64,000 nucleotides of DNA. Source: Trichosphaerium sp. ATCC 40318. Taxonomy: Eukaryota; Protista; Tubulinea. The stretch covers positions 1-64,000 of the forward strand of contig JALMLS010000062.1 in the NCBI GenBank assembly GCA_038496445.1, given 5' to 3'. Positions 106 to 7,596 of this stretch are shown here, one piece after another (position 1 is the stretch's first letter; each line of letters starts with the position of its first letter). The position numbers and the translations under genes are program-made. The notes under the pieces were generated by a model. The model worked only from the letters and a program-made list of their open reading frames with translations. It was not told where the DNA came from and searched no databases.

Positions 106-2759
106 TATTGATCCTTCAGCAGGTTCACCTACTGAAACCTTGTTACGACTTCATCATCCTTTATGAGCGCAAGTTCGAGCAGGTTCGATAACCGGCAAGC
201 CGGTCGTCCCCCTGGTCTCACTCGCACCCACATCGGTCGATGCGACGGGCGGTGTGTACAAGCAACAGGGACAGATTCCAGGTGCGTTGATGACACACCT
301 GTACGAGGCATTCCGCGTTCGTGGCTACAGTTACAGCAACCAGTCCCTAAGCACGCATGTGTCTTTTCGGAGAAGCAGCATTGAGCACACTTAACATCCA
401 AATCGACCACACGGTGCGCTTTCATGTATTTTTTTTATGAACATTGCAGAAACTTACTTCATAATAAAGTTTGCCTTGGTAAAGATATATAATCTTCCAA
501 GTCAAAGCATTTAAGTGAAGAAGAAACCTTATTTGTTAATTTGAAACGATCCACAGCTCTTTCAATGTTTACACTAAGGAAACGAGTCCAAAGATGTAAG
601 TTTTCATCTAACAGCGCTTCTCATCTTAACATTAAAGGAATTTAACTTCCTAAAAAGCCTCGACGAGGGGGTTAACTCTTTATATTAGGTTCAGGACAGA
701 CTTTTGTTATGAAGGTGGTAGTTTCCGAAGGTGCGTTTAAGTGTAGTCGTATTTAGATAATAAAATCTGAGGTTTAACTCGCTGTCGTGAAGAAGTGTTC
801 TGGCGGTTTCAGGGCTTGCCCGGATGCCTGTTCGGCCCAGGAACCCGTTGAACTAAGCAGTGTAGGCCGCGTGCGGCCCGGAATATCTGGGGGCATCCCG
901 GATCTGTTATAGCCGCCGCTTCTTACGACTTTTCGCCGTCAGTCCTGCACAGGGGTCCCGCACGAGGCGGGGGAATCAATGTGACAGTAGCGATCTCGCC
1001 CGTTATCGGAATAAACCTGACAGATAAGTCCACGAGCCTAAAACGACCATGCACCACCGTTAGCTAACTCGGAAAAGACCCTTCAGTCTGTTCGTCCCCT
1101 TAGAGCGTCCGATCCCGGTAAGTTGTCGCGCGTTGAGTCAAATTGAGCCGCAGCCTCCAGAGCCTGGTGGTGTTGCTCCGTCAATGCCTTTAAGTTTCAG
1201 CCTTGCGACCATACTTCCCCCCTGGGCCCGATTACTTCGGTTTCCCGTGGGAACGGGCCCCGAGCCTTGGTTTGCCCGGCGCCCATTCAGTCGGCATCGT
1301 TTACTGTGGAGACTACACGGGTCTCTAATCCGCTTCGCTCCCTCCACCATCGTTCTAGATCACCGGCCACGCCCTTGCAGAGCGCCTTCGCTTCGGGTAG
1401 TTTGGATCAGGTCAAAAGATTTCACTCCTCGCTGATACCACACTCTCTACCCCGTACGCACCTAGTAATCGTGTGTTCTTTATTAGTGTGAAGACTAACT
1501 CAAGTTTTTTCTCAAAGTACTTTTGTAATTCACAATGTTTTTATTCCCTTAATGAAGAACATAAGTTTTCACTCTGACTTGCATATCAGGATATTGTTCA
1601 TACTTAGTTAAAAATGAGACTTGAGCGTCGCACTTGGTAAAGTGTTGTTTTTTGTTTTTTTAAAGCCCAATTCCAGGATGCTGGTGGGTGGCATAGCGGC
1701 CGAAGCCTAAACTGACCTTGCGTTTGAGCGAAGCCATTTATGCCTGGTCGGGCGATGAAAAAGAGTCGGGGGGTTTTGTCAAGGAGTAAACTCCTATATA
1801 AACCTTGTCCCTCTCAGCTGTGTCGTTGTTTGGACTGCGAGCGCTTTAACAGCAACAGCAAAAGTATAAGCTTTCGGAGTGGGTGTTACCGCGGGTGCTG
1901 GCACCCAACTTGTCCTCCAATAGTTTCTCAGGGCGACATTCAGTTGCCCCTCATTGCGACGACCGGTTTAAATGCCGGCCTCGTTACACTCAGTCGCTGG
2001 CTCGATTTGCAATCAATGGCCAAGTTACGCGCCTGCTGTTACCCGTAAGTACAGGGGCCGTATCTAATGCCCCTTCTCCGGGAACCGAACCCTAGTTCCC
2101 CGTTACCCGTCACTGCCGCGGTAGGCCGTTACCCTACCGCCTGGCTGATAGGTCGGCCGCCCTTCCGACTCGTGGAGGGGGAGAACTCTCAACTTTATAT
2201 CGATATGATCTTTATGAAAAAGCACATTCAGCGAAGGATCGAGATTGAACAAAGTGTTCATTTTTCTTTCACCTAGTTTCACCTTATGTAACTTTACATT
2301 ATTTTTTAGAAACATGTCTAGTCAGAGAGAACTCCTCATAACTCCATCGCATGCCCCAACGCCGCTCTTCCCGACGGAGTACGGACGCCGCTTCCTAAGG
2401 GGAGGCTGCTTCCCTTGGCGAACCAAGATGGGATCGGGTGATCGTCCGCTCCTGAGCGTTGGATGCGACCGATGGGTCCTTGCAGCAGAGGGGCCCATCG
2501 GCAGCGCTAGGCGCATTACGTATTAGCCGCAGGTTTCCTTTAATCCCGGTTATCCGCGGGGGAGGCCACGAGTTTTGGTTATAGTGCGTTTAGGAAAACA
2601 AGTTCCTGTGTGCAAAATGACGTGACCATTATTAGTCTTGTCGGGTGGGTTACGACCGTTTTAAGGAGCCGTTTGCGGCTCCGAGGATACCTCTTTGCTG
2701 AGCTTGCATGGCTTAATCCTTCGAGAAAGCTTATCACTCCTGGCAGGCTCAACCAGGTA
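106..2759 (-). rRNA. 18S rRNA: Highly divergent 18S (SSU) rRNA with large expansion segments
   Basis: Minus strand starts TACCTGGTTGAGCCTGCCAG...GATTAAGCCATGCA. It contains GTGCCAGCACCCGCGGTAA, AAACTTAAAGGCATTGACGG, GGTGGTGCATGG and TTGTACACACCGCCCGTCG, and ends GTCGTAACAAGGTTTCAGTAGGTGAACCTGCTGAAGGATCA. These are eukaryotic SSU conserved blocks with many substitutions. Confidence 0.97.
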
Positions 2760-5750
2760 CCTTTTGCATCAGAGTTTTTAAAGCAGATAGCTGCATTTAA
2801 AATAATTTCTCATCAGACCAAAGGTGGTTGAGGTTTTTAGGTGGTTTTTTGAAGAATGAACTTCATAAGAAACCATTCGATCTTTATTCCTATTCTCTTT
2901 CAAGGAGGATGTAAGATGAAGGTCTTTTTGATGAACATCACAAATACCTGGTGCCGGACAGTACCAGCCTTTCTTGTTGGAGAAGAAGCTGGTATGTCTT
3001 GGTTATGGTTTTTATGGCAAGAGATGCTCATAGAGCACATTGCCACAACAGCATAGGGTTGTGTCTTTTTAAAGGACTACTTTTCTTGATGAGTCATGCC
3101 TATTTTTTACTGAGTAGCCCTTGAGGCATCATCGGTAATAGCTTGCAACTGCATCATTTTTTATACACTCTTTTTTTTGTTTTTCTTTACTATTCAAGTA
3201 CTTGGACTATGCCTTTCCTTGTTAAGCCTTCAAGTTGTAGCAATTAGCTACACTTGCTTTCATTGATGTACTTGGCTTGTGTGCCTTTCCGTCAATTTGC
3301 CTTTCACATTTCTGCTTCAGGCTCACATCTATTATTTAACCCAAGTACTTGATACTTTTCTTTCCATTAGGGTTTTTTTATAAGATATGTTATCTTACAG
3401 TCTTTACGGACTAGTTGGAACACTTTGATTCCTTTCATCCGCCCAAAGCATATGACTTTGCATACACTTTGAACTGTAGTCTTGCATGAACTAATACCTC
3501 TCGATTAGCATTTCTACATCTCCTCCTTTTTTCTTAAAAGAGGAAGTGTTATAATGTTAGAAGAGAAGTCAAGTCAGCTCATTTGCATGATCTAGAACTC
3601 GATTGGCATTTCTACACCACATGGGTGTTATAATGTCAGAAGAGAACCAACGTCATACATTTTTTAGATGGGTTTTGTTGCCCACTGAGGGCTTCAAATG
3701 CACATCTTTTTGTACTACCAACAAAATATGACTTGCACATCATCATATGGTAATTATGGTGTTTTACATAAGCTCAGTACTCGATTAGCGTTTCTACACC
3801 TTTCCCTTTTGGGAGAATGTGTTATAACGTTAGAAGAGAAACAAAAGAGCCAATGCGGTTTTTTGTTGTTGCCCACTTAGGGCGTCAACTTAGTTGTACA
3901 ACTACAATTGTTGTTCACTATGGAACTTCAACTGATATTGTTGAGCAACTTGATTTGCTTACAAGCACTTTAGAGATAGGTTTGATGCTCATCTACTTGA
4001 GATTGCATAACCATGTATGAGATACCTCGATTAACATGTGCCACACTACATTGCTGTAATGCATTACTCATGAAAGAAGAGGAATCCAAGTCTTGTTTGA
4101 CTTCAGAACCTGTTCATCACACAGATGCATTCGGTTCAAGTCACTCTTGGTGTTGTAGGCAACAACAATTACTCGATTAGCATTTCTACATCTCAACAAT
4201 AACGTGAGATGTTCTAATGCTAGAAGAACAAAAGGTTTGCCATTACATCAGTACTCGATTAGCATTTCTACACTTCAAGTGAGTGTTATAATGCTAGAAG
4301 AGCACAGGTACAACGGTTGTTGTCTTTATGGAATGGATGTAATAGAAAAAAAAGCAAGTTGAGGTAAACTACATTGCAACACATTTCACCAACTGGCATC
4401 GTCATCGATGGATATACTAAGAGGCGAGCCGTAACTCGTCCTTTTCTATCACATAATAAAAGCTAGAGTAGCCATACTTGTGTGGTTATGTGGTTATGTA
4501 GGAATGCGCATTGCTGGTTTCTGCTTCCATTCCAAATACAAAAGGTGGGTGCGTAAAAGCAAGAGGACTTACAGCCATGTGCTCTAAAACGCGCAAAACC
4601 CAATTAAAATACATTATTTGGGTTCTTTCTGCGATAGAAGAATACAGGCTACCCTCTTGTGGAATATGCTTGTGTGTGTGGAGGTCGTTTCAGTGCTCTG
4701 TAGTTACAGAGTGACACGTTCGCTCACACTTTCCAGCCATCGAGACACCTGTCTTGTGTAGACAAGCGTTGCTTGATGGAGAGCCAAAAGTCGATTACCA
4801 CTGCCTATGCTATGTTTTTTAAAGCATTTTTCATAGGGGCTTATGTGGTAGAAGATTAATGGCTCGTTAAGGTCCCTCAGCCCGTGTTGTGGCTACAAAT
4901 GTGCTGCACGATGGGCGGGTCCCATACCACCGTGCACTCCCTGTGGGCTTTTAAGGTCCAGCAATCTTTGCTTGGAGGTTGCGCTTTTACCATCTTTTCT
5001 GTATCTTACCCGCTATTGGGTTCAAAGAAAAAAATGGCGCGTCTGATTACCCCTCCTTTTTTTTTTTGCGTGGATCTTGCCAAGGGAAGAGAAGTGACTT
5101 TCTACAGGTGCGCACTACACAATTTTTTTTGTAGCTCCTCTTGCAAGGGCGATTGTGTCGCCTGTTGCTGGAACTAGCTCTGTGGTGCTAACCCTTAGCC
5201 AGCTTCTCTATTTGCGCCGCTTTAGGCTACACGGTTGTAAGACTGACTCCCTTTCCCGAAAATATCGAGTTTTCACGACCCTCACTGCACTTGCTAACAC
5301 TCCCTAAACTTGTAGAGCGTTTGGTATCGTAGTTTTTGATCATCGAAAAACAACTCAAAAAAAAAAGCCTCTTTGCGGTGTTGTACCGCTCACGCCACAC
5401 CGGCGACCTTTTTTTTTATTTCTTTCAACGCGACACGGTTCTGAAATTTACTGGGAGCGTTAGGATATGTCTATGGTACAGTTCGTTTGAGTACAATCTT
5501 TTTTTTGCCCTATCCATAAAATCGAAAAAAAATCCATAAAATTACTCATCGCGCATTCTATTGTACCCTTTCACCATAAATTCGTTAGTTTCGCCTCTTT
5601 TAGGCCGTTCCTGTGCGTCGCGAACGGCAATGACCATTCGATCATTTGCTCTTACAACGCTCCTTCAAGCCCTCAAATCAACCCAAATAACAAACCTTTT
5701 AACAAGCGATAGCAGCCTTGGTCACTTTATGGTAACTTGTTTATTTGACA
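2760..5750 (-). promoter_or_regulatory. 5' ETS / intergenic spacer expected to contain the Pol I promoter
   Basis: Non-coding, hairpin-rich region upstream of the 18S 5' end. No credible spliced gene was found. The promoter position cannot be located by eye. Confidence 0.55.
3500..4302. repeat. Six dispersed copies of a hairpin motif CTCGATTRGCRTTTCTACAY-[variable stem-loop]-RTGTTMTAAYGYYAGAAGAR
   Basis: Copies at about 3500-3565, 3598-3644, 3780-3838, 4026-4081 (degenerate), 4172-4227 and 4254-4302. The arms are complementary and show compensatory changes. Confidence 0.9.
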
Positions 5751-5872
5751 ACTTTTAAAAGCGTTGGGCGCACTGTATCGAATAAAAAAGGGCAACAAAC
5801 TTGGTACAGCGCTTGTAGGAAATTGTTAGCACATTTACATCTGGTTGTTGTTTATTAATCAAGCGTTGTGCG

Positions 5873-7596
5873 TCATAAGTTAGATGTAGCTTTAAATACA
5901 GAGAGTTTATCGTTTGCTTGAAGTGACACCTCCGTCGAACTGTAAACGAAATACACTTTACCTTTGCTCAGCGGCACGCTATTATTACTAGCCTACAAAG
6001 CATTAACGGTTTTTTTTTTCGGTGACTGAAGTATGTTGCGTCAAATATTTGATGCGCGGCTGCTGCAGCGCAATTGTTTGTGATGCTTACCTTTAGTGTA
6101 CCAGAACCTTCATAAGTTAACAATATCGTGGGTCCTTTTTCAGCTGCTAGTGTAATTTTCTCTCCTTTGTTGAGACTCACTTTCACAACTTTGAAATCTG
6201 TCACAGGTGGAGTAAATAGTGTCAAATGTTTTCCCTATTAAACAGCTCTTAGAACATATACAAATTTGTGGAGGCGTCACAGCGCGTTAGCGTACTTGAG
6301 TGACGCCTGACGATGGGATAACCTTTGCACATTCGTAGGTGAGCATACTTGTCAGGGTTTTGACATCTTTGTATTTAGGAGTAAATCCTGCTCTTACAAC
6401 ATTATCAGAGCGTGCCATGCACTCTACACAGTCGCCCTACAAGAAATAGGTTAGTTAAAAGAAGTTTTGTTATTGATTGTTGTGACATAATTGGGTTAAG
6501 ATATGCGTACACTCAAGTAAGCGTGCGGTTGGTTAGGTCCAAGAAAAATAGAAGTTCCTGGAGCGAGTTCAACGTAATTAAGTAAAAACACAATAAAAAT
6601 GCCAACATCAGTAGGATATTCTTTTTGCAATCGTTTCAATAACACGTGTGTTTCTCCTTGTTCGTCTTTGATCCTCTCCATCAGTGTATCAATTTGTTCT
6701 TTAACTTTAGCGTTGTCTCTGGTTACTAGTGTTTGTAACAAGTTCTTCAAAGCAGCTTTTTGTTCTTCTACATCTGTGGCGTCTTTACCAGCTTGTACTA
6801 ATTTTTTTGTTGCTTCTTCGCCTGCGATAGCAGCGAGTTCTGGCTCCTAGTATGGGCTAAACAATTTTTTCTTTAATTTATTGTTTTCAGAAAGTTGCTA
6901 TTGTACCGTTTTAAAGAATGACAATATTTCTGTGTAAGGTCTAAATCCGCACAACGCCTTCATTGGTGTCAATGCTAAAGCGAGTTCTGGTTTATGATTA
7001 GGATCCTTGTACCGCGTAGGCTCTGCGTCGTGTAGTTTTTTGGCGAGTTCTTTGTTTGGATGCGCTGAGATACAAGTATTAGAGTCTCCGAGATTGTTTT
7101 GGGTGTAAACGTGTACCTTGTATCGACAGCGCTGAGTTGATGGACAGCACCTGGGCGAGTAAGCACAAGCCACAAAAAAAAAAAAACACGTTTCTTTTTA
7201 TACAACGATGTGACTCGTACCTTGAAAAGGAAAGGCAATCCGTCGTCAAACTCTTTTGCAATGTCAGCACCCAAAATATCTTTGGGGTTTTTGTTTATGT
7301 GGTCTTTTAGTAATTCTGTTGTGCCGTCGGCGTGTTGCACCTTAGATGGGCCGTTTGGGTGATCTCCAAACCACAATTCTATCAATTAAAACAATAAGAC
7401 AACGTTTTTTAGTTTTAAATTGCGCTATTTACTTGTTTATAAACGGCTAACCTGCGTAATTCTCTTTTGGGTCGATATCATCGCTTCCATTTGGACATTG
7501 TTCAACTGCTAGTTTAGCAACCTCTGAATCAAGGCCTATCTTGCCCCAGGCATATTTTTGGATAGCACAGACTAAAGGAAATACTCTTGCTGTCAT
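5873..7596 (-). CDS. MPI: Mannose-6-phosphate isomerase (type I PMI), multi-exon
   Basis: Exons give [69 protein letters not shown] and [19 protein letters not shown]. Confidence 0.95.

Follow-up and report, generated by a model that had tools for sequence, protein, structure and literature searches.

Covarying hairpin modules in the leader or spacer upstream of the dispersed rRNA genes of Trichosphaerium sp. ATCC 40318

Repeats in the spacers of ribosomal DNA (rDNA) are textbook features, mostly defined by their sequence, and whether they act as DNA or as RNA is seldom clear. Spacer repeats with nested inverted repeats are already known in Amoebozoa: upstream of the rRNA unit of Didymium iridis and Physarum polycephalum, the upstream promoter region (UPR) contains direct repeats that themselves contain inverted repeats (PMC13182076). 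Here we analysed a 64,000-nt stretch of DNA from Trichosphaerium sp. ATCC 40318 (contig JALMLS010000062.1, positions 1 to 64,000 of the forward strand; hereafter, the window), in which an array of hairpins occupies positions 3500-4302, that is, 741-1543 nt upstream of the 5' end of an 18S rRNA gene encoded on the minus strand. The hairpins are structure-constrained modules in a leader or spacer of ~2.4 kb that precedes every dispersed rRNA gene of this genome. New here are the small size of the hairpins, their two invariant loops, a hypervariable tip that always pairs, and arms that are near-perfectly kept across dozens of dispersed and diverged rDNA units.

The array is like the myxomycete UPR in being amoebozoan, in lying upstream of the gene, and in consisting of direct repeats that can fold on either strand and whose copies are heterogeneous (PMC13182076). 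A role in RNA polymerase I (Pol I) regulation was proposed for those repeats and is untested (PMC13182076). In the myxomycetes each unit measures 260 bp, includes a 140-bp palindrome and belongs to extrachromosomal rDNA, whereas the Trichosphaerium hairpins are 47-70 nt long, carry two invariant loops and a hypervariable apex, and sit in chromosomal, dispersed rDNA; the likeness meant here is one of architecture. As in the spacer enhancers and spacer promoters of Xenopus, Drosophila and mouse, repeats of variable number lie between a distal promoter-like block and the gene, are confined to rDNA, and show low-level transcription (PMC2120851). By its variable copy number, its position upstream of the rRNA gene and its rDNA specificity, the array falls within the class of spacer enhancer or upstream promoter repeats. 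Classical enhancers, however, have stretches in common with the promoter of the gene, and a covarying hairpin is not their defining feature (PMC2120851); neither sharing of the Xenopus type nor a duplicated promoter was found here, as a local alignment of positions 5140-5300 with 3150-3520 was no better than controls.

Hairpins in spacer or external transcribed spacer (ETS) RNA that are read by their shape plus a few bases offer a second comparison, namely the stem-loop of mouse promoter-associated RNA (pRNA) with the TAM domain of TIP5 (PMC4446428) and the nucleolin recognition element (NRE; PMC2919729). NRE hairpins occur many times per precursor, and their loop, U/GCCCGA/G, is missing from the array hairpins, whereas pRNA, with its one promoter-matching hairpin, has no sequence resemblance to the family described here. 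The likeness to the TIP5 and nucleolin systems is therefore one of form, and either factor in this amoeba would be hypothetical. Hairpins from the human rDNA spacer and 5'ETS are likewise ~50 nt long, but they are single Pol II loci and not arrays of 2-8 paralogous hairpins (PMC13004009).

The hairpin (hereafter, hairpin A) forms a family that is almost confined to the rDNA upstream modules in this genome. Its arms were sought at up to two mismatches in 70.3 Mb of sequence on 642 contigs, giving 155 left-arm and 160 right-arm matches, compared with 6 and 2 for the reversed-pattern controls. The genome scan suggested at the outset was run with a covariance model built from the hairpin family of this genome, and at least 148 full hairpins fitted the model, for a family total of at least 148-155. 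Nearly all of the copies are clustered 0.7-1.6 kb upstream of an 18S gene, and in every case the + orientation of the hairpin is opposite to that of the rRNA gene. Among the fetched loci, modules in rDNA units hold 4-8 full A hairpins and those in copies lacking an rRNA gene hold 2-3, with irregular spacing.

Five canonical A hairpins and one degenerate copy make up the array in the window, and a seventh, related hairpin (hairpin C) lies further upstream of the gene (Table 1). The 19-nt left arm CTCGATTRRCRTTTCTACA is present five times, at the first position of each canonical copy (shuffled sequences are expected to give 0.00), and a direct-repeat finder additionally reported the degenerate copy, at 4026. 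Tandem Repeats Finder reported no array for these hairpins because their spacing is irregular. Read on the + strand, the canonical fold starts with 3 bp (CUC/GAG), followed by a GA/AA internal loop, a stem of 8 bp (one of them a closing U·G pair), a UCU/UAU internal loop, an ACAC/GUGU stem and a variable apical stem-loop. The five good copies fold at -18 to -23 kcal/mol (z -3.5 to -5.5) and score 61-75 bits with the covariance model, against 20 bits for the degenerate copy and 23.6 bits for hairpin C. The initial annotation had counted six copies, of which five are thus sound and the other is a degenerate relic without a significant fold on the + strand. The stem variants it listed (TAGCATT/AATGTTA, TGGCATT/AATGTCA, TAGCGTT/AACGTTA and TAGCATT/AATGCTA) were all recovered when the sequence was read, and the conserved internal loops are present, with the correction that the second loop of copy 5 is TCT/TCT and not TCT/TAT. 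The motif AGAGAA, which had been taken as an ANANNA-like signal, does follow copies 1-3 but overlaps the paired basal GAG of the stem; the H/ACA hint drawn from it fell away, with neither a pseudouridylation pocket nor an Rfam match.

Table 1 Features of the rDNA unit in the window (positions count from the first nucleotide of the window).
Feature	Position	Strand	Basis
18S (SSU) rRNA gene, 2654 nt	106..2759	-	Rfam RF01960, 1028.7 bits
Likely U3 snoRNA docking site in the 5'ETS	3041..3054	-	14-bp helix with one G·U, with U3 nt 62-75
Three small conserved hairpins, loops GTACTTGR...CTTTCC	3195-3221, 3262-3296, 3340-3372	.	Sequence; unit-type alignment
Hairpin A copy 1	3500..3566	+ (orientation as read; either strand may act)	Pattern match; -22.9 kcal/mol, z -3.97; 61.6 bits
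Hairpin A copy 2, TGGCATT/AATGTCA variant	3598..3644	+	Pattern match; -18.0 kcal/mol, z -3.5; 66.6 bits
Motif/hairpin B (TTGTTGCCCACTGAGGGCTTCAA), partner after an A hairpin	3675..3697	+	Direct repeat
Hairpin A copy 3, TAGCGTT/AACGTTA variant	3780..3838	+	Pattern match; -23.1 kcal/mol, z -4.4; 66.7 bits
Motif/hairpin B, second copy	3866..3888	+	Direct repeat; positional census
Degenerate hairpin A (copy 4), retains CTCGATTAACAT and GAAAGAAGAG, middle lost	4022..4085	+	Direct repeat; z -0.75; 20.1 bits, E 0.014
Hairpin A copy 5, loop 2 TCT/TCT	4172..4228	+	Pattern match; -19.4 kcal/mol, z -5.5; 65.3 bits
Hairpin A copy 6	4254..4302	+	Pattern match; -18.8 kcal/mol, z -3.9; 74.5 bits
Hairpin C, longer relative of A, base TCGAT-TACCAC ... 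GTGGTA-GAAGA as in A	4786..4860	+	23.6 bits; conserved block
Conserved 53-nt block, GCACG-ATGGG...CCCAT-ACCAC-CGTGC	4897..4949	.	Hairpin-forming, judged by eye only
Distal conserved block at the upstream boundary of the rDNA unit	5204..5277	-	Unit homology ends ~5274-5300, just past the block

The folded form of hairpin A is under selection, or at least strong constraint, as judged from an alignment (A1) of 74 distinct family members; all of these are from one genome and related by duplication, so that the number of sequences cannot be taken as a number of independent events. In this alignment, 92% of the stem cells are paired and 10 of the 18 pairs have changes on both sides, for example from A-U to G-C at four stem positions and from C-G to U-A at two. 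None of 500 shuffles reached the observed pairing and covariation values, controls with a slid register gave 29-50% pairing, and RNAalifold recovered identical helices without guidance. The covariation reported in the initial annotation is therefore real among the copies of this genome. The 40 positions of the two 20-nt arms are 97.5-99% identical between unit types, whereas the spacers between hairpins are 67-81% and the apexes 40-73% identical. The apex thus changes faster than the spacer, and its length ranges from ~7 to 29 nt; its self-complementarity nevertheless exceeds that of shuffles (mean gain -2.3 kcal/mol, p=3e-9). Arms conserved against their spacers, compensatory changes, a variable apex that stays self-complementary and the presence of the hairpins in RNA together bear out the earlier proposal that selection acts on secondary structure.

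The two internal loops are invariant mismatches, with G·A in 73 of 74 copies, A·A in all 74 and U·U in all 74, the middle position of loop 2 being C·A or C·C. Such loops would be expected of a recognition surface and not of a plain stem. The distance from arm to arm varies by more than 20 nt among copies, and with it the helical phase, so that the arms meet only when the sequence is folded. This is our main argument that the hairpin, and not duplex DNA, is what is recognised. A comparable form is known from bacterial REP (repetitive extragenic palindromic) and BIME (bacterial interspersed mosaic element) sequences, which are short, imperfect, conserved palindromes with variable loops, located in transcribed non-coding regions and bound by proteins. 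Those elements are prokaryotic, spread genome-wide and unrelated in sequence, which makes this an analogy of form only.

The array region is transcribed. The RNA evidence consisted of unstranded Logan contigs from four runs (X1-X4), which report presence but carry no information on strand, transcript ends or level. Intron-free contigs of a neighbouring minus-strand gene (joints at 5991/6090 and 6233/6295, with CT..AC ends) occur in runs X1, X2 and X4, which are thus cDNA, and run X3 is labelled RNA-Seq. RNA depth is very high from 2761 to ~3170-3190 and lower up to ~3385, where several unit types pile up because the region is conserved. Over the array and beyond, coverage is low yet continuous (depth 25-60 in X1); it ends near 5200, as interpolated from bin depths, just inside the distal conserved block, and is zero at 5261-5735 in X1-X3. 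The unit type of the window has two genomic copies only (C12 and C84), which, together with the zero depth of the single-copy flank at 5261-5735, led us to reject DNA carry-over as the source of the coverage; read-through from the upstream gene was rejected on the same ground. Hairpins of other unit types are also found in RNA contigs, and a 1404-nt contig from X4 reaches from the 18S end to ~965 nt past 3188, into a part without a match to the unit of the window.

One site near the gene bears on the direction of transcription. A single U3 gene was found in the genome (C29:148689-148918, 75 bits), and a stretch ~285-295 nt upstream of the 18S gene is, judging from its complementarity, likely to be the docking site of the U3 hinge (Table 1). 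It anchors rRNA-sense transcription for the proximal 5'ETS only. At the other end of the transcribed region, the distal block would be a candidate Pol I or spacer promoter if transcription is rRNA-sense, and would have the position of a terminator if it is antisense. Between the two, RNA depth steps 5- to 200-fold at a T-run (3172-3180) that is at least 8-20 T long depending on the unit, and a very abundant contig of X1 covers 2947-3168 (depth 3469). The step could mark either the place where Pol I starts or a site of early cleavage in the 5'ETS.

Given these observations, we tentatively favour, at somewhat less than an even chance, the reading that the array provides repeated docking sites, as RNA hairpins, in a leader or spacer transcript made by Pol I. 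We counted for it the confinement to rDNA with fixed orientation, the conserved arms, the covariation, the invariant loops, and the RNA coverage with its boundary; the polymerase, start site, strand, binding factor and downstream effect are what we infer. Pol I would read the region in the direction of the rRNA, from a start at the boundary block (~5200-5277) or just within it, and the product would be a long 5'ETS or a spacer transcript that continues into the gene. In the nascent RNA, every module would fold into 3 bp, a 2x2 or 3x3 loop, 7-8 bp, a 3x3 loop and 4 bp. The invariant irregular stem would serve as the docking site for a hypothetical protein, and the apex would merely close the hairpin, leaving it free in sequence and length. 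Several sites per gene would then concentrate the factor on the rDNA or the nascent transcript, with consequences for transcription, early processing or chromatin. Precedent for repeated hairpin protein sites in pre-rRNA comes from the NRE hairpins of nucleolin (PMC2919729).

Several points weigh against docking modules in a rRNA-sense transcript. The RNA depth step at the T-run near 3170-3190 is large (30- to 200-fold in X3), and the true start could lie there, which would make the array upstream spacer and not ETS. The + strand, antisense to pre-rRNA, folds better in 67 of the 74 copies, by a mean of 3.4 kcal/mol, and carries the invariant U·G pair; on the rRNA-sense strand both internal loops are 3x3 and mean stability falls to -11.8 kcal/mol. 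A 2.5-kb repeat on contig C14 has no rRNA gene and yet retains copies. Finally, relatives outside this genome were not found: ten of ten metagenome stretches with an exact 18-mer are without the right arm, and we regard these matches as chance for that reason.

The step at ~3170-3190 counts in favour of DNA-level upstream promoter or enhancer elements, a reading which we consider rather unlikely. The repeats would be protein sites, possibly extruded or single-stranded hairpins bound by an architectural factor, that boost or insulate the Pol I promoter, and the low-level RNA would be spacer read-through. Copy number (2-8) and spacing vary as in spacer repeats, and the ~700 nt adjoining the 18S gene are 88-98% conserved between units. 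The complementarity of the apex is strand-neutral, as in a DNA palindrome, and the apex outpaces the spacer in change, as palindrome centres do. Motif B and the CAAGTACTTG palindromes, two companion elements described below, resemble duplex binding sites and lack compensatory change, and the direct repeats with inverted repeats in the rDNA upstream promoter region of Didymium and Physarum are a parallel (PMC13182076). One complex, however, could not span both arms in duplex DNA when their distance varies by more than 20 bp, and two conserved mismatched loops make cruciform extrusion costly. Moreover, the array and the distal block are unlike the region at the candidate proximal start, in contrast to Xenopus enhancers, and the region is clearly represented in RNA.

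The better folding of the + strand would instead be accounted for by a modular non-coding RNA antisense to pre-rRNA, possibly a polycistronic microRNA (miRNA)-like cluster with the ~20-nt arms as products, an explanation we hold to be unlikely. The hairpins have the form of miRNA precursors (47-70 nt, arms 97.5-99% against apexes 40-73%), and their conserved arms, variable loops and clustering resemble miRNA clusters; exons of a Piwi domain are present in the genome, and human rDNA spacer promoters and the 5'ETS yield ~50-nt miRNA precursors (PMC13004009). The initial annotation, which named such an RNA among its candidates, had seen the wobble pairs as favouring the strand opposite to the rRNA. 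This holds within the window, where copies 1-3 have G·T at one common stem pair and copies 2 and 3 fold far worse as minus-strand RNA, and one pair of the alignment runs through the series G-C, G·U and A-U. Across the stem cells of the 74 copies, there are 142 G·T oppositions on the + strand and 32 A·C, but a single invariant pair supplies 73 of the G·T ones. C·A oppositions, read as U·G on the rRNA-sense strand, occur often, in 53 of 74 copies at columns 19-59 (loop 2) and in 21 of 74 at columns 25-53 (the first apical pair). In the freely evolving apex the bias is gone, the stability gain over shuffles being equal on both strands (-2.27 vs -2.31 kcal/mol, p=0.58), and hairpins B and C have no strand bias in their pair variants. 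The lean towards the + strand is not independent evidence across copies because it comes from the conserved base of the hairpin. We conclude that the wobble pairs slightly favour the + strand and are not decisive.

Further points against an antisense RNA are that no + strand promoter is evident and that the 70-Mb genome holds no near-complementary targets of the arms: the 155 left and 160 right matches have the same strand split, and all listed matches lie in hairpin modules. A reading of the hairpins as functional RNA modules, a lineage-specific family of ~150 copies beside rRNA genes that would be either nucleolar-factor docking sites or an antisense miRNA-like cluster, is doubtful.

A selfish or neutral palindromic spacer satellite, its arms homogenised by gene conversion and its complementarity renewed by template switching, is very unlikely: concerted evolution is normal in rDNA, intrastrand template switching can yield changes that look compensatory, and one pair shows a non-Watson-Crick double change (G-C to A·A, 10 of 74 copies), but template switching would erase the two internal loops, which are invariant in 74 distinct copies, and with units on different chromosome ends and a spacer at 67-81% against arms at ~98%, conversion tracts would have to be limited to the 20-nt arms.

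Several known classes of element were rejected in turn. Rfam detected no family over 2760-5500 even at E<=5. H/ACA small nucleolar RNA (snoRNA) was set aside since the loops are no larger than 2x2 and 3x3, AGAGAA extends into the paired GAG, and there is no Rfam match at that threshold; for box C/D, no C or D boxes were seen by eye and no Rfam snoRNA matched. A kink-turn would need a bulge, and loop 1 is symmetric (5'-GA/5'-AA). Complementarity of the arms to 18S or U3 is at most 8 bp, which is the level of chance, so that neither a guide or antisense role nor docking of U3 by the hairpins is indicated. A miniature inverted-repeat (MITE) or other foldback transposon does not fit, as no copy lies outside the rDNA upstream module or the modules derived from it (the C14 repeat and the orphans) and the flanks are without duplication. 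A role as origin or fork-barrier hairpins in replication may still be considered; fork barriers normally lie downstream of rRNA genes, and this array lies upstream.

The A hairpins are part of a larger upstream module (Table 1). Motif B (TTGTYGCCCACTNNGGGCTTCAA) has 87 copies in the fetched loci, 65 of them 20-39 nt past an A hairpin, and takes the form GCCC-N5-GGGC with T·G and C·A variants about equal and no compensatory changes. Conservation of hairpin C is ~92% throughout the unit types and the C14 copies that lack an rRNA gene; among its 19 distinct versions there is a double change from TACCAC/GTGGTA to TGCCAC/GTGGCA, along with single changes of both kinds. The 53-nt block is confined to rDNA upstream modules, with 88-94% identity across unit types, and occurs in RNA contigs of X1, X3 and X4. 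Between it and the distal block, a 57-nt stretch (5067-5122) is missing from the 98%-identical sister unit on C84. Closer to the gene, the 10-bp perfect palindrome CAAGTACTTG lies within two of the three small hairpins, without compensatory change in the unit-type alignment, and these hairpins are also retained in the C14 elements. A GGAA/TTCC hairpin (3417-3432), which becomes GGAG/CTCC in other units, is likewise conserved across types and retained in the C14 element.

The rDNA of this genome, instead of forming one tandem array, is spread as single units, each with a unique upstream flank, over the ends of at least 25 contigs (C6, C34, C75, C84, C46, C176, C177, C197, C410 and C592 are among the rDNA-bearing contigs), with the rRNA genes of dispersed units all pointing to the contig end; 59 SSU candidates were counted at first look. 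This arrangement resembles the "rDNA on every chromosome end" of Encephalitozoon and Aurantiochytrium. The telomere-like motif CCCTAG(CCCTAA)3 occurs ~54 times in the genome (e.g., C581:3780-3803 and C469:9421-9444); two listed copies lie beyond rDNA units, a few kb from their LSU side, and small contigs hold many of the rest. The motif resembles part of a conserved subtelomeric junction and not a terminal telomere tract. In the window, the 18S gene spans 2654 nt against the 1831 positions of the model. On the other side of the unit, a spliced minus-strand gene with GT..AG introns (5736-6436) runs towards the rDNA, its 3' end ~460 nt from the unit boundary, with no RNA coverage between them.

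The 2.5-kb repeat on C14 occurs at least eight times, in both orientations, over ~170 kb (347-517 kb; loci L058-L065, e.g., L058:1532-4053). Each is without an rRNA gene and carries 2-3 A hairpins, B, C, the distal block and CAAGTACTTG-type hairpins, together with ~1.2 kb of unassigned sequence that includes a 220-nt duplication; Rfam detected nothing credible in this element, which may represent an orphaned promoter module or a Pol I-type unit of an unfamiliar kind. A few further orphan modules without rRNA genes were found on C343, C354 and C136.

The dispersed units of Trichosphaerium amount to a natural experiment, in which dozens of copies have drifted in their spacer and yet keep an irregular stem, and this argues for recognition of the folded form. 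If that form is DNA, the repeat architecture of the myxomycete UPR would extend to chromosomal, dispersed rDNA. If it is RNA, the family would be a compact example of repeated docking or small-RNA modules tied to Pol I, and, should the hairpins be functional RNA modules, every rRNA-bearing chromosome end would couple a second RNA output to the transcription of its rDNA.

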